Assembly: GCA_030704615.1 (NCBI GenBank)
Contig: CM060732.1
Coordinates: forward strand, 62,930,001 to 62,994,000
DNA from: Takakia lepidozioides
Taxonomy: Eukaryota; Plantae; Bryophyta
DNA length: 64,000 bases
Reading direction: 5' to 3'
Shown here: positions 1 to 41,460 of the stretch, one piece after another
Numbering within the stretch: position 1 is the first letter of the stretch
Layout of the letters: each line of letters begins with the position of its first letter
The notes under the pieces: generated by a model
Databases searched by the model: none
Seen by the model: only the letters and a program-made list of their open reading frames with translations
Told to the model about the DNA's origin: nothing
Made by a program: the position numbers and the translations under genes

Positions 1-406
1 TCGTAGCTACTGTACCACCAGTCCCACTGCTGCTTGCTGAAGCTGCCGGTGCAGCGGCAGGTGTAGCCACTGCCCTCGTGGCTCTAGTGCCCCTAGTGAT
101 GGAGACATAGTCGGGTGACCAGTACATCCTCCACTCCTCGATCTCAACCTCATGCCCCCGCCTGAACTCATGGTAATCATCCATAGGCGGCCCCTCAAGG
201 TGCTGAAACAGCCCTTTCCATGCCATGAACGGCGTAAATAGTTGTGGATTGCGCATTTGCTGCAAATCACACCAACTATCAAACTCTTGGATAAAATCAT
301 CCAACTCAATGGTGCCCACCGCCCCAGAGTATCTTCGTGGCCCCTTGGTAGCTCCATACATCTCCTCCATTGTGTCCCACAATAATGGCAAAGAAACAAC
401 TTGCAT
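1..406 (-). CDS. Partial Gag-like ORF of a Ty3/gypsy-type LTR retrotransposon (runs off the left window edge)
   Basis: Minus-strand frame from ATG at 406 stays open to position 1: MQVVSLPLLWDTMEEMYGATKGPRRYSGAVGTIELDDFIQEFDSWCDLQ...WKGLFQHLEGPPMDDYHEF. The YSG...DDFIQEFDSW...HLEGP spacing resembles retrotransposon gag capsid N-termini. It is absent from the ORF track, probably because there is no stop in the window. Confidence 0.6.
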   Translation of the reverse strand, partial: MQVVSLPLLWDTMEEMYGATKGPRRYSGAVGTIELDDFIQEFDSWCDLQQMRNPQLFTPFMAWKGLFQHLEGPPMDDYHEFRRGHEVEIEEWRMYWSPDYVSITRGTRATRAVATPAAAPAASASSSGTGGTVAT

Positions 407-631
407 CGCCGGTATGAGCCCTCCTGATTCACAATCCGAATCAGAACATTCCGTGGAAGACACAGGAGGTGAAGGTGGCCTAAACCGCACACCTCGTCTC
501 GTGTACCCACTAGTATCGCTAGTGCTCGAACCGGCACTGTCCCCAGCACTAGTGGCACCTCCGTGTTGACATTCAACCGGTCATGAACATGTCCCTAACC
601 CCCTCTCCACAAGGTAACCGGGTAGAGAACC

Positions 632-3600
632 TGTTGCGGCTTATGGTTTGGAATACTAAGTTCCTAACATAGCCTACACCTGAACTTGCATGACCATGGG
701 AATATCATGAAGATACTCCTCAAACCGCCCTCCACGAGCTTCAAAATTCGGCCTTCCAGACCACATGCCAGTCCTTAGTCCACCAGTGCCTCCACGAGTC
801 AGCACAGGCCATCCACAGGTCAACACGGGCCACCACAGACCAGCACAGGCCCACACAGCTCACTGGTCACAGCCGTCACAGTCCCACAGGCCACTGGGCA
901 CAGCCTGTCACAGCCCCTCACAGCTCGTCACAGCCTCAAAGGCCTCAGGCACAGCCTGTCACAGCCCCTCACAGCCGTCACAGCCCCAAAGGCCATGGGC
1001 ACGGCCTGTCACAGCCCCTCACAGCCCGTCACAGCCTCAAAGGCCTCAGGCACGGCCTGTCACAGCCCATCACAGCCCCAAAGGCCTCAGGCACGGCCTG
1101 TCACAGCCCCTCACAGCCCGTCACAGCCCCAAAGGCCTCAGGCGCGGCCTGTCACAGCCCCTCACAGCCCGTCACAGCCCCAAAGGCCATGGGCACGGCC
1201 TGTCACAGCCCCTCACAGCCCGTCACAGCCTCAAAGGCCTCAGGCACGGCCTGTCACAGCCCATCACAGCCCCAAAGGCCTCAGGCACGGCCTGTCACAG
1301 CCCATCACAGCCCCAAAGGCCTCAGGCACGGCCTGTCACAGCCCCTCACAGCCCGTCACAGCCCCAAAGGCCTCAGGCGCGGCCTGTCACAGCCCCTCAC
1401 AGCCCGTCACAGCCCCAAAGGCCATGGGCACGGCCTGTCACAGCCCCTCACAGCCCGTCACAGCCTCAAAGGCCTCAGGCACGGCCTGTCACAGCCCCTC
1501 ACAGCCCGTCACAGCCCCAAAGGCCTCAGGCACGGCCTGTCACAGCCCCTCACAGCCCATCACAGCCCCAAAGGCCTCAGGCACGGCCTGTCACAGCCCC
1601 TCACAGCCCGTCACAGCCTCAAAGGCCTCAGGCACGGCCTGTCACAGCCCCTCACAGCCCGCCACAGCCTCAAAGGCCTCAGGCACGGCCTGTCACAGCC
1701 CCAAAGGCCTCAGGCACGGCCTGTCACAGCCCCTCACAGCCCATCACAGCCCCAAAGGCCATGGGCACAGCCTGTCACAGCCCGTCACAGCCCCACAGGC
1801 CTCAGGGCACAGCCTGTCACAGCCCCGCACAGCCCGTCACAGCCCCAAAGGCCATTGGGCACAGCCTGTCACAGCCTGACACAGCCCGTCACAGCCCCAC
1901 AGGGCACAGGGCACAGCCTGTCACAGCCCATCACAGCCTCAAAGGCCTCAGGCACGGCCTGTCACAGCCCCTCACAGCCCATCACAGCCCCAAAGGCCAT
2001 GGGCACAGCCTGTCACAGCCCGTCACAGCCCCACAGGCCTCAGGGCACAGCCTGTCACAGCCCGCACAGCCCGTCACAGCCCCAAAAGGCCACTGGGCAC
2101 AGCCTGTCACAGCCTGACACAGCCCGTCACAGCCCCACAGGGCACAGGGCACAGCCTGTCACAGCCCATCACAGCCTGTCACAGCTTGCCACAGCTTGCC
2201 ACAGCCCATCACAGCCCATCACAGCCGCAAAGGCCTCAGGCACGGCCTGTCACAGCCCCTCACAGCCCATCACAGCCCCAAAGGCCATGGGCACAGCCTG
2301 TCACAGCCCGTCACAGCCCCACAGGCCTCAGGGCACAGCCTGTCACAGCCCCGCACAGCCCGTCACAGCCCCAAAGGCCACTGGCACAGCCTGTCACAGC
2401 CTGACACAGCCCGTCACAGCCCCTCACAACCCATCACAGCCCCAAAGGCCATGGGCACAGCCTGTCACAGCCCGTCACAGCCCCAAAAGGCCACTGGGCA
2501 CAGCCTGTCACAGCCTGACATAGCCCGTCACAGCCCCACAGGGCACAGGGCACAGGGCACAGCCTGTTACAGCCCATCACAGCCTGTCACAGCTTGCCAC
2601 AGCCCGTCACAGCTCGCCACAGCCTGACACAGCCCGTCACAGCCCGTCACAGCTTGCCACAGCCTGTCACAGCCCCACACATGGCCGCTCTGGCAGTTTA
2701 GCCATTTCTCCAAGGGGTTTAGCCACGCCAAGCTAGGGTTTGTGTCTCTTGGACTCTAGGCTTCTTTCCACCGAGCTATGGTGGCTGTGAGGAAATCAGC
2801 AAGGTATTCTTGCTCTTTCGGCTCCCACACACCACCATAGTAGCCCTAAGCCATGAGGTGGTTGCCACAAACCAAGCCTTCTTTCTCACTTAGCCTCCCC
2901 AAACACGCCACTAAACTCAATGGCAAACAACCAAGCCCTGCTGGTTCCCAGCCCTTGTGAGCACTCATTCAAGCACTCTCCTTGGCCATAGCATCTGTCT
3001 TAGAGCCTATTCCAGCCCCCTACACCTGCTGCTTCAAGAGTTGCGCTCCCTTCAAGCTTGAAGTTGAAACCCCAACTCACATAGGCCCTACAAGTGCTTT
3101 TCTTTCACTCCAAGTGGAAACCAGCCCTAGACCTTCCGTTCTAGCTCTCTAAAGCTTGAAAACAAGAGCCTCAATGGGCTGAAGGCATGCTCCACACATG
3201 CCCCACTCTCACCATAAGAGAATCAGCTCCTTTGCTTCATTTCTTGCACCCACAAACCCGAAAATACAAGCTTCAGCAGGCTGAAAGCATGCTCCACATG
3301 CCCTACAGGGAAACCAGCCCCCTCTTCCTTGCTTGCCCTCCAAGCTTGAAGATGGAAGCTTCAATGAGCTGAATACATGCTCCACACATGCAACCTCTTC
3401 ACACAAGAGATATCAGCCCCCTATCTTGGCTCCTTGGCTCCTTGATGCTCTCTAAGATAAGATTAAGCACTCCACAGCCTTTGCCAAGTTCCTGAAACCC
3501 TAAGGCTTACATTTCCAGCCACAAGACACTTCTCTTGTGGTGCAAGAGCTCTTCTTCCAAGCTCTGAAACCCTAGGTGCACATTCCATGGCCTTGCCGCA

Positions 3601-4433
3601 CATCTTAGCTCCTGTTCCAGCCCTGCTTTTGCCATGACAAGAGCCCTCTCAATGCTGAAGCTCGAGATTGAAACCCAATCTCACCATACTCCACAAAGTG
3701 CACTGATTTGCCCCAAGCAAAATCAGCCCTTTCGCTTGGTCTTGCAATCCTTCACACAATGAAAGCTCGCATTCCCAAGTCCAGTTCTCAGCTTTGCCAC
3801 CAAAGCCACTATAACCTGCTCTTGACTGGTCCTCTTCCCAATCGTGCTTGCTCATGCATGTACACAATCTGGAACCATCAAGGTGCTCTGGAATTACCTG
3901 CAGCATGGTGCTTTCATCTCTGAAGCTGAAGATCGAATGCCAAGGTCTACCACCTCGTAACCCACATCGCCTCCGCTTCTAACAACTAAGAGCTCCACGG
4001 TGCTCCTTGCATAACAACCTGGTTTCTCTCATTCTCAAGCAAAAACCACAAGTGCTACAACTAACTCGTATCTGGCACTCATAGATACGAGCTGATCTTT
4101 CTCGAGTGATAAAGAAGAAGAATACAAGCACAAGCTCATGCGAGCTCACAAAGCTGAAGCATAAACTCATGCATATATAACCTCATCACTCAAATACAAG
4201 TCAAGCCAAGTGCACCCCACGCCATGGGGAATCCACACTACGGCGCCATAGCTAGGCGCGGTGAGGCTCAACTCGAGAAAGATGAGCCTCCCGCGCTTGC
4301 CGTGAAGATAACCACTCCAGGGCCTAAATCTGCCTTGACCCCTGGATTGACACTTGGGCCAATCCCAAATGTCAATATGTAAAAGCTAGCTATTTCCTAG
4401 CTAGTTTCACACTAGTGGTAAAATAACTTGACA
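632..4433 (-). mobile_element. Putative long 5' LTR / 5' non-coding region of the gypsy-like element
   Basis: On the minus strand it begins TGTCAAG (plus ...CTTGACA ending 4433) and could end ...GCAACA (plus TGTTGC at 632), just upstream of gag. Sequence character changes abruptly at 4434. No canonical TGG PBS was recognised, so the boundaries are tentative. Confidence 0.4.
840..2676. repeat. Tandem array: 51-bp higher-order unit built from 10-bp GTCACAGCCC subunits
   Basis: Unit GGCACGGCCTGTCACAGCCCCTCACAGCCCGTCACAGCCCCAAAGGCCTCA (copies start at e.g. 1090 and 1141), with 41-bp and CAAAGGCCATG variants. Confidence 0.95.
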
Positions 4434-14654: not shown

Positions 14655-15280
14655 GTGGCACAACCCTGCCATCCTGCAGTTTCCCAAAACTTACAGTTAC
14701 CACGTTTACACTCATACATCTCAAATCTCCTAATAATTCAAAGAAAGACATCTTTGGAGGAGAGAGGCCCTGCTATCTTTCACAGGGCAGTGTACTATTG
14801 GTCAGCTAGACAAAAACTGTCCTAATACTCTTTCAGCTGCAACCATTAAATCTTCATCATCAAATGATACCTGACATTTTCAGAGGAGGTCCATGGGTAC
14901 ATTGATGTTAGAACCATCACTAGATTGTTCTTGTATCATCACAGCTAGCTCAGCCTTCACAGAGGAGGGTTTGACCAAGTCTAAATCCAAAGGGCCTTCC
15001 TGGTGTGCATAAGCCTGAAGTCTGGTGATCAATGGACTTTCCTGTAAAACTATGTGTGTCTGACTGAGCAACCGATTTTCAACCACATGCTCCACAAAGA
15101 CCAGGGCTACAACCACCAGAGTATTGAGAATCTCTCAATTACCAGGGGACAACCTTGAACAACCTAGTTTCATGCCCTGAGTGAAGATAGCCTCACCTTA
15201 TTCAACATGTTGTCCCACAACTTTGAAGGACCTGAAATGAATTCCTTCCAAAGATGTTCCATCCTTATTGCTTTCCCTGC
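14655..15280 (-). pseudogene. Truncated PDF-PPR pseudogene (PDF-motif exons plus the first bases of the PPR exon)
   Basis: Exon-like ...AIRMEHLWKEFISGPSKLWDNMLNK|GTGAG (~15197-15276), a frameshifted second PDF exon (~14875-15041), and the CTGCAG|GATGGCAGGGTTG PPR-exon start at ~14672. Confidence 0.7.
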
Positions 15281-15618
15281 ATCCAAATACCAGATCTTTA
15301 GCAGCATCTAATTGTCATTTAAGATATACGAGTGAAAATTCCAAATGAACCTCTCTATTGGCAAGTTTCATTTAATTCAAATACGCAAAACTAAAAACTG
15401 TTCTTGATTTTGTGACTTGGAATTTGGGAGCTCAATTCTCATGTCCACTACCAGTCAAGCCTCATAATCTCAGGATCTTCACACTTACTGTTCCTGGAAA
15501 TCTGTCAACAAGTAAGAGAAAGTGCAGGACTAATGATCTCTTTCAACTTACCAAGAAGTAACCATGACCTTCCTTGATGTGTGAAGTGACGCACTTTCTT
15601 CTATGCATGTTACTGGTT

Positions 15619-18468
15619 TCACCAGTAATCCCCACACGAACAAACCCCATCCTGGAAGTGATGAAAACGGTGGGCATCCCGTACAACAATTGCTCGCCCA
15701 ACAATCTTTGAGATGAACTTGGTTGCAGTGTGGCAGTCACCGCACACCCGAAGGTTTTTAGTGATGTGGATGGGTGTCCCAGGGGATGTACTGATAAGCC
15801 CTAAAGCTATGGCCAGCTTTTCACTGTGGTGGCAAAGCGAAGTTTCCTTTTGCTCCTCCTCCACATCATGCAATACAAAGCGTGTGTCTGGCACGTACCC
15901 AGCCTCCTTCATCATCTCAAACAATTTCTTCAGCTCAGCATGGATTTCCCTGATTCGTGGATGCAGTTTGTCTTCTACAACAAATGTATGCACCTGGTTG
16001 TCCACCTCAATGCTGCTGCGCCCAGGCTCCTTTTTGACACCTCTGTCCTCCATCAATTTTCTCACCTGCGCCTTTTCATCCCACCTGCCAGCTGCAGCAT
16101 AGATGTTTGATAGCAGCACATAAGTTCCGGCATGCTGTTTATCCCACTTGAGAACACATTTTGCCGCACGTTCTGCTACCTTCACATCGCCATGAATTCT
16201 GCAGGCACCAAGCAAGGATGCCCACACTGAAGCACTTGGTTCAACTGGCATATTGTTAACAAATTCCTCTGCCTGATCTAGTTGCCCTGCACGACCAAGA
16301 AGGTCAACCATGCAGCCAAAATGCTCCACTGAAGGACTGAGGCCATGATCTTGACTCATGGAATCAAAGAGGTGATGCCCTTCTTCCACAAGGCCTGCAT
16401 GACTACATGCAGAGAGCAGAGATATAAAGGTGATGCTGTCTGGCTTCAAACCTTCCTGTTGCATTTGTTCAAATACTTGCAGGACCTCCTTACCACAACC
16501 ATGCTGAGCATATCCTGCAATCATTGTATTCCATGATACCACATTTCGTCTGTCCATTGTATCAAACACATGACGTGCATCCTTGAGCCTCCCACACTTT
16601 GCATACATGTCGACAAGGCTATTCTCCAAATTGACATATGATGCAATCCCAGCTTTTGTGATGTCGGCATGGACCTCTCTGCCCTTTTCCAGGGCCCCTA
16701 GGCTGGCACAAGCATTGAGAACACAAATGAATGTAACTCTGTTGGGCGTTCCCCCCTCCCGTAGCATTTGCTCATAGATATGAAAAGCCTCCTTACCACA
16801 CCCATGCTGAGCATATCCTGCAATCATTGAAGTCCATGAGACTACATCTCGTTCAGCCATACTGTCAAACACCTGACGTGCATCATTGACACTCCCACAT
16901 TTGGCATACATGTCCACAAGATTATTACCCAGATCAACATTTGATACAATTTCAGCTTTGACAATATCAGCATGGACCTCTTTGCCCCTTTCCAGAGCTC
17001 CTAGGCTCCCACATGCATCTAGAACACCAATGAACGTGACCACATTGGGTGTCATCCCTTCCTGTTGCATTTGCTCGTAGATCTTCAAAGCCTCCCTACC
17101 AAACCCATGTTGAGCATATCCTACAATCATTGCACTCCACGAGACCACATTTCGTTGAGCCATATTATCAAACACCTGACGTGCATCCTTCATGCTCTGG
17201 CATTTGGCATACATGTCAACAAGGGCAGTCTCGAGGATGACATCTGGCACAATTCCAGCTTTGATGATGTCAGCATGGACCCTTTTGCTCTTTTCCAGGG
17301 ATCCTAGGCCGGCACATGCATTGAGAACACAAACAAATGTGACTATGTTGGGTGTTACCTTTTCTTGCTGCATCTGCGTATACATCTTCAAAGCCTCCTT
17401 ACCGTACCCATGTTGAGCATAACCTGCAATCAGCGCAGTCCATGACACCACATTCCGTTGTCTCATATTGTCGAACACGTGACATGCGTCCTTCATGTTA
17501 CCGCACTTGGCATACATATCAGTGAGCGCAGTCTCCAAAATCATATCTGGAGCAATTCCAGCTTTGATGATGTCAGCATGGACCTCTTTGCCCTTTTCCA
17601 GGGCTCCTAGGCTAGCACATGCATTCAGAATGGAAACGAATGTGACCCTGTTGGGCCTTACCCCTTGCTGTTGCATTTGCTCATACATATCAAGAGCCTC
17701 CCTACCACACCCCTGCTGAGCATATCCTGCAATCATCGCACTCCATGAGACCACATTCCGTTGCGCCATTTTGTCAAACACTTGATGCGCATCCTTCATG
17801 CTCCCGCATTTGGCATACATATCAGCAAGGGCAGTTTCCAACAAAATATTTGGTGCAATTCCAGCTTTCATGATGTCAACATGGACCTCTTTGCCCATTT
17901 CCAGGGCTCCTAGGCTGGAACACGCATTTACAATGCAAATGAATGTAACCATGTCGGGTGACACTCTTTCCTGTTGCATTTGCTCATATATCTTGAACGC
18001 CTTCCTACCACACCCATGTTTGGCATATCCCGCTATCATTATATTCCATGAAAAAACATCTCGTTCAGTCATATTGTCAAACACTTGGAATGCATCCACT
18101 ACACTCCCACACTTCGTATACATGTTGACAAGTGTGTTGAGTAGAAAGGTGTTTGGCTTCAATCTGCTTTGGATAATGTGGGCATGCACCTGCTTTCCCT
18201 CTGCTAAATGTTTCATCTTGATGCACTCCTGCAAGAGACAGACATAAGTACTGCAGTCTGCCCGAATGCTTTGCTGGTGCAAAATGTGCAGTGCCACTTT
18301 CAGTTGGCCTGCCCTACACAGTGTCCTCACATACCCACAAATGGCAGAAGAGTTATCCTTGACTCCCTCTCTTGGCCTTCTTTCAAGAACAGTGGCCATG
18401 TAGGAGGTGCGACCGCTTCTGCCGCTCTCATGTCCAATGGACAACTGTGCCTGATTCAACCCTGCCAT
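15619..18468 (-). CDS. PLS-class PPR protein with E1/E2 and DYW deaminase domain (organellar C-to-U RNA editing factor), 949 aa
   Basis: L,S + 5x(P,L,S) + P2,L2,S2, PG box PGRSSIEV, HSEKLA, CGDCH and terminal CSCGDYW. The ORF is intact. Confidence 0.97.
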   Translation of the reverse strand: MAGLNQAQLSIGHESGRSGRTSYMATVLERRPREGVKDNSSAICGYVRTLCRAGQLKVALHILHQQSIRADCSTYVCLLQECIKMKHLAEGKQVHAHIIQSRLKPNTFLLNTLVNMYTKCGSVVDAFQVFDNMTERDVFSWNIMIAGYAKHGCGRKAFKIYEQMQQERVSPDMVTFICIVNACSSLGALEMGKEVHVDIMKAGIAPNILLETALADMYAKCGSMKDAHQVFDKMAQRNVVSWSAMIAGYAQQGCGREALDMYEQMQQQGVRPNRVTFVSILNACASLGALEKGKEVHADIIKAGIAPDMILETALTDMYAKCGNMKDACHVFDNMRQRNVVSWTALIAGYAQHGYGKEALKMYTQMQQEKVTPNIVTFVCVLNACAGLGSLEKSKRVHADIIKAGIVPDVILETALVDMYAKCQSMKDARQVFDNMAQRNVVSWSAMIVGYAQHGFGREALKIYEQMQQEGMTPNVVTFIGVLDACGSLGALERGKEVHADIVKAEIVSNVDLGNNLVDMYAKCGSVNDARQVFDSMAERDVVSWTSMIAGYAQHGCGKEAFHIYEQMLREGGTPNRVTFICVLNACASLGALEKGREVHADITKAGIASYVNLENSLVDMYAKCGRLKDARHVFDTMDRRNVVSWNTMIAGYAQHGCGKEVLQVFEQMQQEGLKPDSITFISLLSACSHAGLVEEGHHLFDSMSQDHGLSPSVEHFGCMVDLLGRAGQLDQAEEFVNNMPVEPSASVWASLLGACRIHGDVKVAERAAKCVLKWDKQHAGTYVLLSNIYAAAGRWDEKAQVRKLMEDRGVKKEPGRSSIEVDNQVHTFVVEDKLHPRIREIHAELKKLFEMMKEAGYVPDTRFVLHDVEEEQKETSLCHHSEKLAIALGLISTSPGTPIHITKNLRVCGDCHTATKFISKIVGRAIVVRDAHRFHHFQDGVCSCGDYW

Positions 18469-18671
18469 CCTGCATGTTTCTAAACTCTTAATGGTAACCT
18501 CATACCCTCACCTAATATACCTCGACTTTCCCAGATACTTCAAGCAATGATCTCTCCAGGTACTTGATAAATGTTAACACGCTTAAAAACCTACTGCAGT
18601 CATATATTGAGAGTACTACCAATTTGATCCTCTTGAATTTGGAAATCTCTCAGAAATCATCGAAACGGTAC

Positions 18672-19215
18672 CAATTGTAGTCTGGGCGTGGAGCTCCATG
18701 TTGTGCGGAGATAGTAGAAATATGACCATGTGCTCGACTAGGTATTCCGGCAGATAGCTCTGTTTTCACGCAAGCAGGGTTCGTCCCACTCTCAATCCAC
18801 TGGGCCTCCTTGGTGCGTCTACGTCTGAAGTCTGGCGATCTTGGACTTTCATAGGGAAACCACATGGTTTCATCTGAGCAGCCACAACTTTGGCCCTGGC
18901 CTCACAAAGACCAGGATACAAGCTCTGAGCTTCTGTCAAATAACAATGAACAACCTTGAACAGCCTACTCTCATGCCCTGCTAGTACGTCAGAACCACCT
19001 AGCTGTTTTTTCCGAGGAAAAGTAAAATTGTGGTTAATGTAAGCAACTGGAGACAAAATCCAGTCCACAACGTATCATAATGCCAGCTCCATCCCCAAGC
19101 AAAATCTGTCACCTCCTAAATGAAGATGGCCTCACCTTCTTAAAGCGTTTGTCCCGCCACTGTGCAGCATCTGAGAAGGACTCCTGCCAGAGCCGCTCTC
19201 TTCCTATCGCTTGGT
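18672..19215 (-). other. Upstream PDF-motif exons of the 15.6-18.5 kb PPR-DYW gene (degenerate)
   Basis: 19136-19215 encodes QAIGRERLWQESFSDAAQWRDKRFKK|GTGAG. 18672-18850 encodes ESPRSPDFRRRRTKEAQWIESGTNPACVKTEL...YN, with a phase-2 donor matching the acceptor at 18470. The acceptor of the second exon reads AT rather than AG. Confidence 0.75.
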
Positions 19216-21071: not shown

Positions 21072-22135
<1,064 letters not shown>

Positions 22136-24821: not shown

Positions 24822-25813
<992 letters not shown>

Positions 25814-27594: not shown

Positions 27595-30500
27595 TCACCA
27601 GTAATCCCCACATGAACAAGACCCATCTTGGAAGTGGTGAAACCGATTGGCATCTCGCACAATAACTTCTCGCCCAACAATTTTTGAGATGAACTTGGTG
27701 GCTGTGTGGCAGTCACCACACACCCGAAGGTTCTTGATGATGCGGATGGGCATCCCAGCAGGCATGCTGATGAGCCCGAAAGCAATGGCCAGCTTCTCGC
27801 TGTGATGGCAAAGAGAGAATTCCTTTTGCTCTTCCTCTACATCATGCAATACAAAGTGTGTGTCAGGCACATATCCAGCCTCCTTCATCTGCTCAGACAA
27901 TCTTTGGAGCTCAGCGTGGATTTTGTCAATCTGTGGATGTGATTTGTCATTGACGATGAATGTATGGACTTGCCTGTTGACCTCGATGCAGCTGCGTCCT
28001 GGCTCCTTTCTGACACCTCTCTCCTCCATCAGGTTTCTCACCCTGGCTTTGTCATCCCACCTCCCAGCCGCAGCATATATATTTGATAGCAGGATGTAAG
28101 CTCCAGCATGCTGTGGATCACTCTCAAGAATGCTTTTGGCGGCACGTTTTGCTACCTCCACATTGCCATGAGTTCTGCAGGCACCAAGCAAGGCCCTCCA
28201 AACGGTAGCTGCTGGTTTGACTGGCATTTGGTTAATGAAGTCTTCTGCCTCATCTAGTCGTCCTGCACGGCCAAGAAGGTCCACCATGCAGCCATAATGC
28301 TCCACTGTAGGAGTGAGGCCATGATATCGAGTCATTATATCCAAATAATGACGGCCCTCATTCTCTAGGCCCACATGACTACATGCAGAGAGAACAGATA
28401 TGAATGTGCTACCGTTCACTTTCAGGCCTTCCTGTTGCATTTCTTCAAATAATGAGAGCGCCTCCCTACCATACCCATTCTGGGCACATCCTGCAATCAT
28501 TGCATTCCATGCAATCGCATCTCGTCTGACCATGTTGTTGAACACTTGACGTGCATCATTTATGCTCCCACATTTGGCATACATGTCAGCAAGGGCTGTT
28601 TCCAGATAAACATATGACAGAAATCCAGCTTTCCTGATCTCAGAATGCACCTCTTTGCCCTTTTCGAGGGCTCCAAGACTCGCACACACATCGAGCACGC
28701 AAATGAACGTGACCCTGTCAGGGGTCACCCCTGCTTCTTGCATTTGCTCATAGATCTCATAAGCCTCCCTATCAAACCCATGCTGAGCATATCCTGTGAT
28801 CATTGCACTCCATGAGACCACATCTCTATTAGCCATTCTGTCAAAAACTTCCCGTGCATCCCTCATGCTCCCGCATTTGGCATACATGTCAGCAAGGGCC
28901 GTTTCCAAAATGACACCTTGAGCGATTCCAGTTTTCATGATATCAGTATGGACCTCTTTGCCCTTTTCCAGTGCTCCTATGCTTGCACATGCATTGAGAA
29001 CACAAGTGAAGGTGACACTGGTGGGGGTCACCCCTTCCCGTCGCATTTTCTCATAGACCTCAATAGCCTCCCTACCACACCCATGCTGGGCATATCCTGC
29101 AATAATCACATTCCATGAGACCACATTTCGTTCAGCCATATTGTCAAACACTTGACATGCATCCTTCATGCTCCCACATTTGGCATACATGTCAGCAAGG
29201 GCAGTCTCCAGAATGAGATCTGGCGGGATTCCAGCTTTAATGAAGTCAGCATGAACTGCTTCGCCCTTTTTGAGGGCTCCTAGGCTGGCACAGGCATTGA
29301 GAACGCAAATGAACGTGACTCTGTTGGGCCTCACCCCTTCCTGTTGCATTCGCTCATAGATGTCTAAAGCCTCCCTACCACAACCGTGCCGGGCATAACC
29401 TGCAATCATTGCACTCCATGAGACCACATCTTGTTTAGCCATATTGCAAAACACCTCATGTGCATCCTTCATGCTCCCACATTTGGCATACATGTTGGCA
29501 AGGGTATTCTCCAGAATGATATCTGACTTAACTCCACTTTTGCTGATGTCAGAATGGACCCGCTTCCCCTTTTCCAGGGCTCCAAGGCCAGCACATGCAT
29601 TGAGAATGCAAATGAACGTAACTCTATTTGGCATCACTCCTTCCTGTTTCATTTGCTCATAGATCACGAGAGCCTCCCGACGACACCCATGCTTTGCATA
29701 TCCTGCAATCATTATATTCCACGTACTCAACTCTCGTTCAGGCATGTTGTCAAAAACTTGGCGTGCATCTGGCACACTCCCACACTTGGCATACATGTTG
29801 ACAAGGGCATTGAGGAGAGAGATGCTTGGCTTGAATCCACTCACAATTACGTGGGCATGCACCTGCTTCCCCTCTGCCAGGTCTTTCATGTTGATGCACT
29901 CCTGCAAGAGAAAGATATATGTACTCGAATCGGCCTGAATGCCTAGTTCGTTCAAAATCTGTAGCACCTCTTTCTGTTTACCCGCCTTACATAATGTCTT
30001 CACATACTCACAAGTGCCAGAAGAATTATTGTTCACTCCTTCTCTTGGTCTTCTTTGTAATGCGGGGGTGGTGGAGGTACCCCTGCTACCTGTCTGATGT
30101 AGGACACATAACTGTGCTTGATTCAAGCCTGCCATCCTGCATGACAGAAAACTCTCGGTTACAAACCTTTGCACTCAAACATAAATCTCCTAGATACTTG
30201 GAAGAAAAATCGTAGCCAGAGGACAAGTTTTCCTAGATTTACATATTACCAGTTAGCTACTCTGACAATAAACAGTCCCAATTCTACATGTTTCAGTTGG
30301 AATTCTTGAACCATCATTAAGACAATACCCGTTGTATTCTCGGCCGTGTACATTCATAGTAGAACCATCACCACATGGTGCTCGCCCTTCTATCATGGCA
30401 AATAGCTCTGTTTTCAGCCAAGGAGGGTTTGACCAACTCTCAATCCAAAGGACCTCATTGGTGCGCTTATGTCTGAGGTCTGGAGATCTTGGACTTTTCT

Positions 30501-30703
30501 GTGAAAACCACCAGTGGGCAGCTGAGCAGCGAAGTTTCAACCACAGCTGTCATAGAGCAACCACCAGGCCTCTTTCAAATAATAGGGAACAACCTACTTT
30601 TGCTCCTCAGGAAGATGCCTTACCTTATAAGACCTGTCGTCCCACCACTGCGAAGGATCGGAAATGAGGTCCTGCCACAGCAGGTCCATGCTTATAGCTT
30701 GGC
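27595..30703 (-). CDS. PDF-motif + PLS-PPR-E-DYW protein (spliced; first exon uncertain)
   Basis: Main exon 27595-30136 (L,S, 4xPLS, P2L2S2, E, HSEKLA/CGDCH/GDYW). In-frame upstream exons are 30329-30498 (KSPRSPDLRHKRTNEVLWIESWSNPPWLKTEL...) and 30624-30703 (QAISMDLLWQDLISDPSQWWDDRSYK), with canonical GT-AG and matching phases. Candidate first exon 30821-30956. Confidence 0.9.
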
Positions 30704-31634
30704 CTGCATTCAACACGTAGAACTTCAGCAAGCAGCTCAATTCTTCTGAAGGGGTTTGGAGGTACATAATGCAGCAGATCCTCTGGGCATCCAGCTTGGC
30801 AGTGCCGGGCAATGAAATACTTGCAAATATTGCCCAGCGTATAATGTCCAAAAGGACGAAGAAAGTTGGTCTTGATTGCTTGAGAAGGGAGCCCCACAAA
30901 CTCCAAGAATCTGCTGCCTCTTCCTTCTCTCCGAACGGGCAGAGGGATGGCAGCATGCTCCGTCGCTATCCTGTGTAACCCAAGGCCCTGTCTTCTGCTT
31001 GCGATGAAGGGGCGGGATGCTTCACGTCTTGGTGCACGGAGTAACGAATCTGCCCCACATGAAACTGATCATCATACTCTTTCGTTGTAGTTGTAAGCTT
31101 GTACCTCCTACGACACTTCAATGTAATTAGTTTCAGTCTGCAAGATTAGAATACGCATAGGGGGCGTGTAAACTGTCTGCGTTGGATCTATACACCAGAT
31201 TGTCGATTTGAAGCTAGACACATTTTGGTCGAAGGAATTCTCTACGGGTTGTGTAAGAACATTGTCCCATGTCCTCCTTTCCTCATTTCCTTCAATATCT
31301 GCTAGAATATGTGACATTCGTGATATACCTACATTCTTTCCAATCATTTTGTGTGTCAATGTGTGGGGGAGAGAGAGATGGAGAAAGGATAGCTTGCAGT
31401 AGCCCCCGCAAAAGCAGGGATGGACCAACGCAGATTCGTAGTGTGTTCTTTAACGAACCTTGGCAGGTCTAACCTGTGAGGCGTAGTTCAGTATGGATAC
31501 CCAGCCCCAAAAGTCTATAACTCAAAGCAGCCAAGATGTAATTCTCCTCCCCTAGCCCCACTTTGAGATGTAATTGCCCAGCAATTAGGAGCTGCTAATT
31601 ATCTCTGTGTTGGTGGTGCTTGAGGGCTATCCAA

Positions 31635-33295
31635 GTAACAAGTGTACACAACTTTGGGCTGCAGAGGTTATTGGCAGATTCTTTGCATTGGTTGGGACAA
31701 CTGGTCTGATAAGGTGAGGATGCCTCTATTGCTAAGCACTATTACGTCCAGGATAGAAAGGATTGTCCTCTATGTCAGCAACAGTGCAATGTTATGGAAG
31801 AAAATCCAAGTCATTTGGTCGATGGTCCCCACGCCTGGGCACTAGTCTACACAACTTATACTAAAGCTGTAGCGTGTCTCACAATGTGAATTCAATTATA
31901 TGGATAGTGAGGGAGGGGCACTGAAAGGGCCACATAGATGGACATCAATGGACATCATCGTGCCATGCTCCATGATATTTTGACAGATTGACGGGTACAG
32001 TATGCATGGAAAAGATCCTGCCAAAGGTGATGATCACTATTTACGGATGGTTATGAAACAGAAGGACTGGAGTCATGTAAAGCTTTATTGCACAGGATAC
32101 GTTGATTGCAGGGTACAGTATGTATGAAGAAAATCCTGTGAGCTGGTGGTGTTTTATTTTTTCAGACTAGACCATGATTTCAGTTGCTTTGAGTGATCAA
32201 AACTAAGATCTTCACATTGGCACTAGTGCTTCTCATGTTCGATTCATTGGTTGTCAATCAACAATAGCGTTGAAGTTGGTTTTTTCAAAGTTTTGGCCTT
32301 TGTTTTGAAGCGATGTTTGTGGAGCTTGTGGTTGTAGCCTGGTCTGGGAGGCTGTGGTCAGATTTATCACGGCTTGCTTTTCTACTGGTGCTTTTCAACT
32401 TCATTAGACTTCAGGCACAAGCGCATAAAGGAGCTCCTTTGGATTGGTATTCAATGGAACCCAGCTTGGGTAAAAGCTAGCTACAGACGAGGTGGATGGC
32501 TGCCAATCAGAGTATGGCTCTTTTCCTTGTGAGAACTTGGATTTTTTAAGATGGGAATCTAGAGTCTGGGATGATGGTCCAAGGACAGCGTCTTGGTCAA
32601 CATGTGCTCCGGAACAACACGACTCTGGTAAACAATTACCCTGGCTTGAAGGTGGCATTGGCCACCACAAGCTCCTTCAGTCTTCTGCAACACCTGGAAT
32701 TTTTGTATGTTTGTATGGTTGTGCTGTGCATGAGACACATAAAGAGCTCGAGTAGATCAAAGAAATATAGCTACCAAAGCACCACTCAATAGAGACTGAG
32801 GCATTTAGAAGAAAGCAAATTCCGATGTTTATGAGTTCTTGATTGCAGGTCAAGCAATAAGCATAGCACAACTCTGGCAGTCTTTCACAGATTGCTCACA
32901 GTGGGGGGACAGCAGATTTGAGAAGGTGAGGATATCTACATTTAGGATGCAAAAGGTTTTGTCTGTCAGCAGGTTGTTCATGTTTGTTAGCCGGTGCTTT
33001 GAAAGTAGGTTGCTGAAGTTGACTCCAGTCAATTGAAAGATGCTTGTCTCTGGTGGTTGTAGCCTGGTCTTGCCAGTCTCATTGTGGCTCCTGAGCGTCC
33101 CACTTCTGGTCTTTGCAGAAACATCCAAGATCAACAGACTTCAGACATAGGAGCACAAAGGAATTCCCTCGGATTGAGAGTTGGTCAAACCCTTCTGGGG
33201 TGAAAGCAGAGCTAGCTGCGAAGAGGCAAGTTCCAGTACAACTGTGAATGGTTTTTGATGTACACCATCGAGCTCCATGCCAAGAATGCAACAGT
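31635..33295 (+). pseudogene. Two degenerate PDF-motif exon pairs upstream of the 33.5 kb PPR gene
   Basis: First pair: ~31635-31713 (..DSLHW/WDNWSDK|GTGAG) and ~32398-32490 (SLDFRHKRIKELLWIGIQWNPAWVKA). Second pair: 32849-32925 (QAISIAQLWQSFTDCSQWGDSRFEK|GTGAG) and 33119-33295 (KHPRSTDFRHRSTKEFPRIESWSNPSGVKAEL, then a stop and a lost donor). Confidence 0.7.
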
Positions 33296-33466
33296 TATTG
33301 TCTGTTTTATGATTATTCGAGGGTTGCAGTTGAAACTGATAGAAATTATGCAGTTTGTTCTCAAAGAAGCTGACTACAGTAGTTGTGTAATGTTGATATG
33401 TAGCAAGAAGCCTGCTAGTCCTTTGACTCTAAAGGTCCACAACTCAAGAGTTTTGCGTCCTGCAGG

Positions 33467-35993
33467 ATGGCAGGGTTAAATCAGGGACAGCTGTTGGTTG
33501 GATGTCAGAGTGGTGACAGGGGTAGCACCTTCACAATCATCACTACTGTCGAGAGAGGACCAAGGGAGGGAGTCAACAACAACTCTTCTGACACTTGTAG
33601 GGAAGGGCGACCGAAAGAGGCATTGCAGATGTTGAACCACCGAGGCATTTGGGCAGACTCCAACTTGTATGTCTCTCTCTTGCAGGAGTGCATTGACATG
33701 AAAGACCTTGCAGGGGGCAAGCAGGTGCACACCCAAATAATTCAAACTGGATTCAGGCCAAGCATCTTTCTCCTCAACACCCTTATAAACATGTATGCCA
33801 AGTGTGGGAGCATGGTGGATGCACGGCAAGTGTTTGACAAAATGCCTGAACGAGATATGTTTACATGGACCAACATGATGGCAGGATATGCCAAGGATGG
33901 GTGTGGTAGGGAGGCTTTCAAGATCTACCAACAAATGCAACAGGAAGTAGTAGCGCCCCACAGGGTCACGTTCATTTGTGTTCTGAATGCTTGTACCATC
34001 CTTGGAGCCCTTAAATGGGGCAAAGATATCCATGCTGACATCATCAAAGCTGGAATTGTGTCAGATATTATTCTGGAGACAGCCCTTGCTAACATGTACA
34101 TGAAATGTGGGAGCATGAAGGATGCACAGCAGGTCTTCGACAAAATGTCTCACCGAGATGCGGTATCATGGAACACCATGATTGCAGGATATTCTAAGCA
34201 TGGGTGTGGTATTGAGGCTCTCAAGATCTATGAGCAAATGCAAGAGGAAGGGGTGTGGCCCACCAGGGTAACGTTCATTTCTGCTCTCAATGCATGTGCC
34301 AGCCTAGGAGCACTGGATAAGGGCAAAGAAGTCCATGCTGACATCATGAAATTTGGAATTGCATCATATATTAACTTAGAGACTGCCCTTGTTGACATGT
34401 ATGCCAAATGCGGGAGCATGAAGGATGCACATCAAGTGTTCAACAAAATGCCCAAACGTAATGTGGTCTCTTGGAATGCAATGATTGCAGGGTATACTCA
34501 ACATGGGTATGGGAGGGAGGCTTTGGAGATGTATGAGCAGATCCAACAGGAAGGGATGAATCCTGACAGGGTCACGTTTACTTGTGCTCTCAATGCCTGT
34601 GCGAGTCTTGGCGCCCTGGAAAAGGGCAAGCAGGTCCATGCAGACATATGTAAAAGTAGAATTGTTCCAGATATCATTTTGGAGAATACCCTTGTGGACA
34701 TGTATGGAAAATGCGGGAGCATGGAGGATGCTTGTCAAGTGTTCGACAATATGACCAAACGAAATGTTGTTTCATGGAGTGCAATGATCACAGGATATGC
34801 TCAGCAGGGGTGTGGTAGGGAGGCTTTCAAGATCTATAAGCAGATGCAATGGGCACGGGTGGCACCCGATGAAGTCACATACATGTGCATTCTCAAGGCG
34901 TGTGCAAGCCTAGGAGCCCTGGATAAAGGGAAGGAGGTCCACTGTGACATTTTGAAAGCTGGGATTGAATCGTATATTACCCTGGAGACTGCCCTTGCCG
35001 ACATGTATGCAAAATGCGGGAGCATGAAGGATGCACGTCAAGTGTTCGACAATATGACTCAACGGAATGTGGCCTCATGGAGTACAATGATTGCAGGATA
35101 TGCCCAGCATGGGTGTGGTAAGGAGGCAATCCAACTATTTGAAGAGATGCTACAGGAAGGCTTGAAGCCGGAAGGAATCACTTTTACATCTCTTCTGACT
35201 GCATGTAGCCATGCAGGCCTAGTGGACGAGGGTAGTCACTATTTTGATTCCATGGGTCGTGATCATGGTGTCACTCCCACAGTAGAGCATTTTTCCTGCA
35301 TGGTAGACCTTCTTGGCCGTGCAGGGCAATTGGATCAGGCAGAAGATTTCATTAACAAAATGCAACTCAAACCAGATGCGGGGGTGTGGAGGGCACTGCT
35401 GGGTGCCTGCAGAGCTCATGGTGAAGTGGATGTAGCAGAACGTGCAGCACAAAGAATCCTCAAGAGTGATCCACAGAACTCTGCAGCTTATGTGCTCCTA
35501 TCTAACATCTATGATGCGGCTGGGAGGTGGGATGATAAAGCAAAGGTTCAAAAATTGATGGAAGACACAGATATTAGAAAGGAACCAGGGCACAGCTGCA
35601 TTGAGGTTGACAACCAGTTGCATACATTTCTTGAAGAAGACAGATCACATCCACAAATTGAAGAGATCCATTGGTGAGCTAACGAAATTGTTTGGGCAGC
35701 TGGATGAGGCTGGGTATGTTCCGGACAAACACTTTGTATTGTATGATGTGGATGAAAAGCGAAAGGAATTGTCTCTTTGCCTCCACAGTGAGAAGCTGGC
35801 AATTGCTTTTGGCCTTATGAACACCTCCCCTGGGACACCTATCCGCGTCATCAAGAACCTTCGGATGTGTGGTGAATGTCACACTGCCACCAAGTTCATC
35901 TCGAAGACTGTTGGCCGAAAAGTTGTTGTGTGGGATGGCTACTGCTTTTATCACTTCAGAGATGGTGTGTGTTCTTGTGGGGATTACTGGTGA
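33467..35993 (+). pseudogene. PLS-PPR-E-DYW gene with a +1 frameshift at the start of the DYW domain (truncated E+-like protein or pseudogene)
   Basis: The 736-aa PPR ORF ends EEIHW* at 35677. The DYW tail (GELTKLFGQLDEAGYVPD...HSEKLA...CGECH...GDYW) continues in another frame to 35993. There is an extra T in ATCCATTGGTGAG near 35671. Confidence 0.9.
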
Positions 35994-37673: not shown

Positions 37674-38663
<990 letters not shown>

Positions 38664-39794: not shown

Positions 39795-39937
39795 CCTGAA
39801 ACCTTCCTCCAGCTCGAGGTTATGCATGCTCGCTGGGCTATGCTCGGAGCGCTCGGGTGCATGACTCCTGAGCTTCCAGGCAAGAACGGCACCAAGTTTG
39901 GAGAGGCTGTGTAGTTCAAGGCTGGATCTCAGATCTT
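39795..39937 (+). pseudogene. LHCB pseudogene fragment
   Basis: [42 protein letters not shown], with a deletion, a frameshift and a stop. Confidence 0.9.
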
Positions 39938-40195
39938 ACATTTGTTGTTGTAGAAGACACTGTACCATGAATCAGGGAAATCCACGATGAGCTGAAGAGA
40001 TTTTTGAGAGGTGAAGGAGGGTGGACACACGTTGTGTATTGCATGATGTGGAGGAGGAAACAAAAGGAAACTTCGCTTTGCCACCACAGAGAAGTTCGCC
40101 ATAGCTTTAGGGCTCATCAGTACATCCCCTGGGACGCCCATTCACATCACTAAAAACCTTCGGGTGTGCGGTATGACTGCCAGACTGCGACCCAG
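39938..40195 (+). pseudogene. DYW-domain pseudogene fragment fused directly to the LHCB fragment
   Basis: Nucleotide homology to the 3' end of the 15619-18468 gene (...ATAGCTTTAGGGCTCATCAGTACATCCCCTGGGACGCCCATTCACATCACTAAAAACCTTCGGGTGTGCGGT). Confidence 0.88.
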
Positions 40196-40535
40196 TGGAT
40201 CTCAAAGACTATTGAGATCCAGGAACAAGGTGTGAAGAAGATCCTGAAATTGTGAGGCTTGACTGCTTTGCACCAGGGAATACGTGGTATCTACGCCAGT
40301 ACATGTGAACACCTTCTTGCCACGAGTTGGAGAGGCTTTCAAACTGAGTCCTCTCCTTAGGGGTGGACATGAGAATTGAGCTCGCAAATTTTGGGTCACT
40401 AAATCAAGAGCAGTTTTTAGTTGTGCGCACACGAATTAGATCAAACTTGCCAAATAGAGAGGTTCATTTGTAATTTCCACTCATATTTCTTAAATGACAG
40501 TGAGATGCTGCTAAAGATCTGGTATTTGGATGCAG

Positions 40536-41460
40536 GGCAAGCAATAAGGATGGAACATCTTTGGAAGGAATTCGTTTCAGGTCCTTCGAACTGGTGGCAC
40601 AACATGTTGAATAAGGTGAGGCTATCTTCACGAAGGGCATGAAACTAGGTTGTTCAAGGTTCTTAATAATTGAGGGATTATTAATACTTTGGTGGTTGTA
40701 GCCCTGGTCTATGTGAGGATGTGGTTGAAAATCGGTTGCTCGGTTACACACACATAGTTTTGACAGAAAAGTCCATTGAATCACCAGACTTCGGGCTCAA
40801 GCACACCAAGAAGGTCCTTTGGATTTAGACTTGGTCAAACTTTCCTCAGGTGAAGGCTGAGCTAGCTGTGATGATACAAGAACAATCTAGTGATGGTTCT
40901 AACATCAATATTGTACACATGGACCTCCTGAAAATGTCAGGTATCATGTCGATGGTGAAAATTTAATGGTTGCAGCTGAAACAGTATCCGGACAGTTTCT
41001 TGTCTAGCTGACCCATTAGTACACTACCCTGTGAAATTTAGCAGGGCCTCTCCTCAGAAGATGTCTTTCTTGGAATTATTAGGAGATTTGAGATATGTTG
41101 TGTAAATGAGGTAACTAAACGTTTTGGGAGACTGCAGGATGGCGGGGTTGAATTAGGTACAGTCCTGCATTGCAGATCACCCTGTAGTGGTAGGGTGGAT
41201 GCACATCTACAACCTCCACCGCCAAGAGAGGGAGTAAAAAAGAAGTGTGGGAATATGAGGACACTACGGAAGGCAGTTGTCGATCATGAATGACCTAGCA
41301 AAGGGAGAGCAGCTGCACACCCACATAATTGAAAATGGATCCAAGCCAAGCATCTTTCTGCTTGATATCCTTCTAAACATGTATCGCAAGTCTGGAAGTG
41401 TCGCGGAATACCTGATCGGGGGATGTTTACGTGGACCGTATTGAGAGCAACTTCATGCCA
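40536..41460 (+). pseudogene. Truncated PDF-PPR pseudogene (mirror of 14655-15280)
   Basis: 40536-40615 encodes QAIRMEHLWKEFVSGPSNWWHNMLNK|GTGAG. A degraded second PDF exon lies at ~40767-40940. CTGCAG|GATGGCGGGGTTGAAT at ~41138 is followed by a decayed first PPR motif. Confidence 0.75.

Follow-up and report, generated by a model that had tools for sequence, protein, structure and literature searches.

Does a moss RNA editing factor carry a second nucleic-acid-binding module ahead of its RNA-reading repeats? The question is raised by a gene, here called gene A, on the reverse strand of a 64,000-nucleotide (nt) stretch of the Takakia lepidozioides genome (assembly GCA_030704615.1, contig CM060732.1, positions 62,930,001 to 62,994,000 of the forward strand), which we refer to as the window and in whose numbering all positions are given. 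Proteins with pentatricopeptide repeats (PPR) and a DYW domain are the RNA editing enzymes of plant organelles, and they are under development as programmable base editors. The initial annotation of this locus had proposed that gene A encodes such a factor and that two small upstream exons, joined in frame, add the PDF motif of the organellar single-stranded DNA (ssDNA)-binding OSB proteins. We consider it probable that gene A belongs to an old PLS-class PPR-DYW subfamily of seed-free plants and that the module is present in the translated protein, where it would serve as a nucleic-acid anchor.

The last exon of gene A holds one uninterrupted frame that runs from an ATG at 30135-30133 (MAGLNQ...), directly past the splice acceptor, to the stop codon. 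Within this frame Pfam reports PPR, PPR_1, PPR_2 and PPR_3 in up to 11 stretches, as well as the E_motif (2.3e-21) and the Eplus_motif (2.9e-7), and the DYW_deaminase profile is matched over its full length (4e-45; positions 1-93 of 93). The translation has the zinc-ligand signatures HSE (in HSEKLAIAF; the HxE type) and CGDCH (the CxxC type), and ends in ...CSCGDYW before the stop. As judged from its translated PLS array, E and E+ motifs and DYW domain, gene A is a PLS-class PPR-DYW gene with an intact frame, in agreement with its first assignment as an editing deaminase. In these proteins, C-to-U deamination is carried out by the DYW domain, and RNA on the upstream side of the target is recognised by the PLS array (PMC10482289, PMC13324415). 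Neither the frame of gene A nor that of its neighbouring paralogue C has an exact match in the protein collection, and no SSB domain was found by Pfam in the frames of gene A.

Ahead of this exon, the two small exons claimed by the initial annotation can be read directly in the DNA, with canonical splice sites and with phases that join them to the PPR exon. Exon 1, in the borders first drawn, is preceded by TGCAG (AG 30705-30704) and ends in AAG/GTAAGG (GT 30623-30622); exon 2 is preceded by ...CACAG (AG 30500-30499) and ends in AACGG/GTATTG (GT 30328-30327); the large PPR exon is preceded by CATGCAG and begins at 30136. Exons 1 and 2 join in phase 0, while from exon 2 into MAGLNQ... the codon is split 2+1 nt (GG/G, glycine). 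The predicted peptides are LWQDLISDPSQWWDDRSYK for exon 1 and KSPRSPDLRHKRTNEVLWIESWSNPPWLKTEL for exon 2, the latter running as KSPRSPDLRHKRTNEVLWIESWSNPPWLKTEL..REYN into MAGLNQ.... Retention of intron 2 would bring in an in-frame stop, as the open reading frame (ORF) 30253..30540 ends inside it. An ORF finder that starts at the internal ATG would indeed miss the module, which enters in frame through two small exons before ATG 30135. Upstream of exon 1 the frame is open back to an ATG at 30956 (111 codons up to the donor), an ATG within exon 1 itself, at 30689, is also in frame and has an A in position -3 and a G in position +4, and short upstream ORFs begin at 31075, 31072 and 31060.

The identity of the encoded peptides was assessed with two PDF profiles, one made from 22 copies in PPR homologues and one, OSB-only, from 177 copies in 90 non-PPR proteins of 250-520 amino acids (aa). 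Both were run on the six-frame translation of the window, with the gene A exons scored separately. The PPR-homologue profile gives 48.4 bits (E 1e-13) for exon 2 and 26.1 bits for exon 1; the OSB-only profile gives 29.5 bits (E 8e-8) and 22.9 bits (E 1e-5), respectively. Both peptides thus match a profile made from OSB proteins, a comparison that had been named as a check on the motif, and on these scores the two exons encode the two parts of an OSB-type PDF module. The signature of this module extends over ~50 residues (W..WWDNR..K..PDFKHK.T.E.LW....P.WV). An alignment of 19 PPR-linked copies (A2) has 14 columns without variation among its clubmoss, moss and liverwort sequences; gene A retains 11 of them, and its three changes (F9>I, F30>L and K31>R) are all conservative. 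At the nearly invariant columns F8 and V50 it has leucine, and N18 (of WWDNR, a column in neither class) is aspartate.

A search with the A2 profile against 1.84 billion representative sequences returned 1,266 proteins at E<=0.001. Among the best 150 of these, most have 250-520 residues with the motif near the C-terminus, and 11 are PPR proteins. The profile, made from PPR N-termini only, recovers proteins with SSB and PDF at E-values of 1e-23 to 1e-41, and Pfam SSB (PF00436) lies mid-protein in nine of ten OSB-size matches scanned (six above the cut-off, three below). A central SSB domain with C-terminal PDF is the OSB architecture (PMC6963530, PMC4166229, PMC13393729). Judged by these profile matches, the PDF module is not exclusive to OSB proteins. 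Pfam has no family for the PDF region, either in the exon-bearing ORFs or in the N-termini of six homologues, and because no Pfam model matches, the module has gone unseen in domain surveys. Some of the proteins returned by the A2 search (P0121, of 1160 aa, and P0122-P0125) have 9-13 tandem PDF modules, whereas OSB proteins are described with far fewer, one to five.

Is the combination peculiar to this locus? We collected the 120 best proteins found with the PPR frame of gene A, whose PPR part is at most 57% identical to that of its homologues. The pattern WWDNR...PDFKHK occurs within the first 250 residues in 24 of the 120, and the OSB-only profile finds one to three N-terminal PDF modules in 27, most at 56-80 bits and some truncated or second modules at 10-40. 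These 27 carriers come from Diphasiastrum complanatum, Sphagnum, Ceratodon and Calypogeia, with four JGI records and one weak match in the fern Adiantum; the survey of PDF, PPR and DYW architectures that the initial annotation had suggested thus finds the combination in seed-free plants and JGI records. The 58 proteins from gymnosperms and angiosperms among the 120 homologues all lack the module. Full-length Diphasiastrum models start with ~130 presequence-like residues, followed by the module, a short linker and the PPR array.

The gene structure points the same way. In Ceratodon purpureus KC19_1G285400, a targeting exon (..SGG) is followed by a phase-1 intron, an exon ending in ..SQWWDNRNRK, a 147-nt phase-0 intron, an exon starting with GNPRAPDFKHK.., a phase-2 intron and the PPR-DYW exon. 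The intron phases of gene A (1, 0 and 2) and the break within the module are the same, as they are in two paralogues in the window, B and C. Since the plan of gene A is the Ceratodon plan, the exon model follows a gene structure older than the split between mosses and vascular plants. From these sequence comparisons, the PDF-PPR fusion is a real and ancient architecture, one that is present in public proteomes without a name there. When a characterised Physcomitrium protein bearing the module was sought, three Ceratodon proteins were the only ones returned.

The three paralogues in the window (A, B and C) are ~63-66% identical in protein, and both half-module exons sit at the same places in all of them. 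Their exons align well, whereas almost nothing aligns between their introns; the lengths of all exon indels are divisible by 3, and the exon 1 acceptor TGCAG is conserved in B and C. Gene A keeps all its splice sites and an open frame.

Transcript evidence was sought in contigs from two runs of one organism, with 15 contig matches listed; that the runs are RNA is a guess. Contigs without a mismatch, at a depth of ~13-15, lie on the 3' end of gene A and on its big exon. A 551-nt contig (depth 13.3) matches 31097-30624 and stops at the predicted donor, with 72 nt off the DNA. That the match ends at 30624, the last base of exon 1, is as expected from a spliced transcript and argues for an RNA run. 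Contig depth reaches 314 in the exon 2 bin of A (29 and 54 in the neighbouring bins) and 210 in that of B, against a range of 3-54 beside both, and position 30457 is covered by at least seven distinct contigs. The depth and the number of distinct contigs suggest that this exon is common, at >=90% identity, to many members of the family in that organism. Depth is ~5 over 31100-31576 and 0 over 32100-32700.

Does the translated protein still contain the module? A reading in which the two small exons are now only a spliced 5' leader, or are nearing loss, and in which an ordinary PPR-DYW protein is made from ATG 30135, is possible, if rather unlikely. Several observations weigh against a protein with a functional PDF module and have to be set out here. 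The first come from the transcript side. The 551-nt contig that supports the donor of exon 1 passes the acceptor at 30703 without a break, so that exon 1 may be longer than first drawn, or that intron is retained; of the border pair in the initial annotation, the donor is supported and the acceptor is in doubt. Moreover, the joints of exons 1/2 and 2/3 are absent among the contig matches listed from these presumed RNA runs.

A second group concerns the N-terminus. The upstream targeting exon was not found: blastn of the DNA ahead of the three paralogues revealed no conserved block, and none of the ATG-led frames upstream of gene A is presequence-like. MDLLWQDL.. and MLPSLCPFGEKEE.., the possible N-termini ahead of the module, are acidic and unlike presequences. 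By contrast, the stretch right after the last acceptor, MAGLNQAQLCVLHQTGSRGTSTTPALQRRPR.., is presequence-like and conserved in A, B and C; from ATG 30135 it is rich in Ser, Thr and Arg, with one acidic residue in 35, and the ATG itself is conserved in the three paralogues. Some Diphasiastrum models (P0043, P0101) begin at the equivalent Met. A PDF-less product from ATG 30135, or two products, is possible.

The third group concerns constraint on the module. In Nei-Gojobori counts among A, B and C, with the codons of both exon pieces pooled, dN/dS is 0.59-0.74 for the PDF exons (51 codons, indistinguishable from neutral) versus 0.25-0.29 for the PPR frames, and dS is 0.33-0.43 in the module exons, lower than the 0.64-0.69 of the PPR frames. 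The PDF exons have decayed in both neighbours, although the enzyme frame of C is intact. In paralogue C the motif is worn (WRDKR, PDFRRR, AQW, PACV): the exon 2 acceptor is lost (AG>AT, with a possible in-frame acceptor at 18897-18896, 45 nt upstream), as are four invariant residues, one by K31>R and three by the radical changes H32>R, L39>Q and W49>C. Paralogue B has an in-frame stop at 33245-33247, has lost the GT of its exon 2 donor, and has its PPR frame (33467-35677) frameshifted ahead of the DYW domain (35601-35993); with the DYW domain out of frame, the stop in exon 2 and the lost donor, it is a dead copy. We read the substitution pattern as relaxed constraint on the module in the local cluster, least advanced in A. 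In gene A, too, the name-giving F of PDF has become L and the N of WWDNR is D, and the anchor is probably weakened by the changes PDF>PDL, WWDNR>WWDDR, KHK>RHK and WV>WL.

What speaks for the long protein, and against an untranslated leader, is the message itself. After splicing, the in-frame ATGs at 30956, 30767 and 30689 all precede 30135 with no stop between them, and since there are three of them, with the one at 30689 in a good context, scanning ribosomes should make the long form. The splice sites and open frame of gene A are kept, as are 11 of the 14 invariant residues of the module, with conservative changes at the rest, and the contig, of probable RNA, places exon 1 in a transcript at full depth.

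How, then, might such a protein work? We propose a subfamily in which the targeting peptide is followed by OSB-type PDF modules, one to three in number, and these by the PPR array. Two small exons, with the conserved phase-0 intron between them, encode the module of gene A, and a phase-2 intron leads to the single PPR-DYW exon. A spliced mRNA, translated from an upstream in-frame ATG, would yield a protein that carries the module. The module could then act as a sequence-independent anchor on single-stranded nucleic acid and raise the local concentration of the editing factor at nucleoids or on nascent transcripts, in a division of labour in which site specificity would come from the PPR array and catalysis from the DYW domain. 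The proposed anchoring draws on OSB1, whose PDF motif is sufficient for ssDNA binding (PMC6963530); ssDNA binding by the motif is also stated in PMC4166229, and both papers cite Zaegel 2006. OSB2 is identical with PTAC9, which belongs to the plastid transcriptionally active chromosome (PMC4080259). For PPR proteins of mosses, a location in nucleoids is not known (PMC9459714).

An unlikely alternative, which leaves the module in the protein, is that it makes a protein-protein or RNA contact (oligomerisation, recruitment of further editosome components or unspecific RNA affinity on the upstream side of the PPR-bound site), in which case neither nucleoids nor DNA would be involved. Tetramers are formed by OSB2 (PMC6963530), and OSB1 and OSB2 prefer ssDNA in comparisons with RNA, an experiment in which an inability to bind RNA was not shown (PMC4166229). 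The predicted fold of the module, computed from the homologue modules in A2, is a helix, two short strands and a helix, at a confident predicted local distance difference test score (pLDDT) of 88.5. Foldseek found no solved relative below E 3.5 (best VIA Z 2.6), and without one the binding mode cannot be read from the structure. Against a pure contact module stands the sole experimental statement available, that on ssDNA binding by the PDF motif of OSB1 (PMC6963530).

Anchoring on nucleic acid could also be taken further, to a seed-free PPR-DYW subfamily tethered by PDF to organellar ssDNA, with transcription-coupled editing, deamination of ssDNA as the extreme, and loss of the anchor in seed plants. 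This stronger version is doubtful; if true, the anchoring sites would be nucleoids, transcription bubbles or replication intermediates. Deamination of ssDNA by a PDF-PPR-DYW protein is only remotely conceivable. Finally, a chance resemblance or gene-model artefact, in which unrelated open stretches happen to have splice-like sites, might be suspected from the shortness of each exon peptide and the lack of a matching Pfam model, yet it is refuted by the profile E-values of 1e-5 to 1e-13 within the window, by the same two half-exons preceding all three PPR-DYW paralogues and by the identical intron position and phases in the moss Ceratodon, and we give it practically no weight.

Table 1. Gene A and related features in the window (window positions; PDF and PPR parts as predicted)
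Feature	Position	Strand	Description
Gene A last exon	27595..30136	-	linker, PLS-type PPR array, E, E+, DYW deaminase; stop codon 27595-27597
Gene A intron 2	30137..30328	-	192 nt, phase 2, GT...AG
Gene A exon 2	30329..30498	-	second half of PDF module (KSPRSPDLRHKRTNEVLWIESWSNPPWLKTEL) and 24-codon linker
Gene A intron 1	30499..30623	-	125 nt, phase 0, inside PDF module after WWDDRSYK
Gene A exon 1 (borders of the initial annotation)	30624..30703	-	first half of PDF module (..QAISMDLLWQDLISDPSQWWDDRSYK)
Stretch 5' of exon 1 acceptor	30704..31097	-	covered unbroken by one informative contig
Paralogue C	15622..19215	-	intact PPR-E-DYW frame 15622-18468; PDF exons 19136-19215 and 18672-18850
Paralogue B	32404..35993	+	head to head with A; PDF exons 32849-32925 and 33119-33244; extra PDF half 32404-32480
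Relic D	40421..41408	+	worn PDF halves 40421-40639 and 40685-40825, then PPR fragment 41286-41408 (41 residues)
PDF-halves relic	14984..15307	-	orphan pair without a PPR frame downstream; downstream of paralogue C

The DNA around the exons may preserve traces of how the split module arose. The last ~50 nt of intron 1 of gene A (30499-30549, reverse strand), in frame with exon 2, read as a worn PDF first half, QLWLKLRCSAAHWW, in which W3 and the WW pair are spaced as in the consensus; the profile alignment reaches into the intron here. The stretch before exon 2 is similar in the paralogues: in C (18851-18895) it reads CSDETMWF, and in B it lies at ~33095-33118. A worn first half before exon 2 in A, B and C suggests, on sequence grounds, that the exon for the second half originally held a whole, undivided module, or that the present arrangement is a hybrid left by reduction of an ancestor with two modules. 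The extra PDF second half upstream of exon 1 of B reads LDFRHKRIKELLWIGIQWNPAWVKAS (32404-32480, forward strand) and matches the partial first module that, in models from Diphasiastrum, precedes the complete one (..TRKEALWINNRFNPHWVRARL..).

Elsewhere in the window, a DYW-like fragment lies at 39851-40213 (forward strand), ahead of relic D. Three chlorophyll a/b-binding genes are interleaved with the paralogues, at 21075-21761 (reverse), 24950-25810 (forward) and 37677-38420 (reverse); each matches Pfam Chloroa_b-bind at ~1e-50, and their C-termini are identical. The region looks like the product of repeated duplication of a block with an LHCB gene and a PDF-PPR-DYW gene. At the edge of the window, positions 1-4000 are G+C-rich (0.55-0.61), with a GC skew of ~-0.3 and long overlapping open frames that contain repeated units rich in Pro, Ser, Thr, Ala and His (e.g. 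..GHSLSQP.TARHSPKGHWAQPVTA..).

Among the papers that could be searched, none links PDF with PPR or DYW. A 2026 survey of the OSB family makes no mention of PPR or a fusion (PMC13393729), and a review of moss (Physcomitrium) PPR proteins lists no such domain (PMC9459714). In searchable published architecture schemes, the N-terminus of PPR-DYW proteins is treated as a targeting peptide only. The present comparison places a conserved module of the nucleic-acid-binding OSB type before the PPR array in liverworts, mosses and clubmosses, in a position where the 58 seed-plant relatives have none. The module gives a testable handle on where editing takes place, at the nucleoid and nascent RNA versus on free RNA, and it may bear on the hundreds to thousands of editing sites of early-diverging plants. 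Copies with the full signature, such as Ceratodon KC19_1G285400 and Diphasiastrum O6H91_*, would suit experiments better than gene A.

Among known systems, OSB proteins share the same ~50-residue PDF module with gene A. They have a central SSB-like OB fold with C-terminal PDF modules, whereas in gene A no OB fold was found and the module is N-terminal to PPR-DYW. With a shared module, no SSB domain and the module at the N-terminus, the product of gene A is not an OSB protein. Its enzyme part is like that of Physcomitrium PPR56, PPR65, PPR71 and PPR79, which likewise have a PLS array, E, E+ and a DYW domain with HxE/CxxC (PMC9459714, PMC10482289). Published architecture tables give accessory domains such as SMR, CBS, RRM and NYN and no PDF (PMC9459714), whereas in gene A two extra exons add PDF. 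A specific PPR tract is likewise combined with a less specific nucleic-acid module in maize PPR4 (RRM) and in PPR-SMR proteins (PMC9459714, PMC3858433); unlike gene A, they belong to the P class, their domains are unrelated and they lack a deaminase. Like gene A, Diphasiastrum O6H91_* proteins (P0023, P0044, P0057, P0095, P0119 and others) have PDF directly before PPR(-E-DYW), and so do Ceratodon purpureus KC19_1G285400 (P0076), Calypogeia fissa (P0042) and Sphagnum (P0010, P0118). These public models keep the full signature, many with a presequence of ~130 residues, whereas gene A has conservative changes and its presequence exon was not found. Their motifs, for example that of P0119 (..LWQVFFADPSQWWDNRFIKKSSKFPDFKHKSTHEVLWIEGLLNPPWVKAKL), can be aligned with the gene A motif at every residue.

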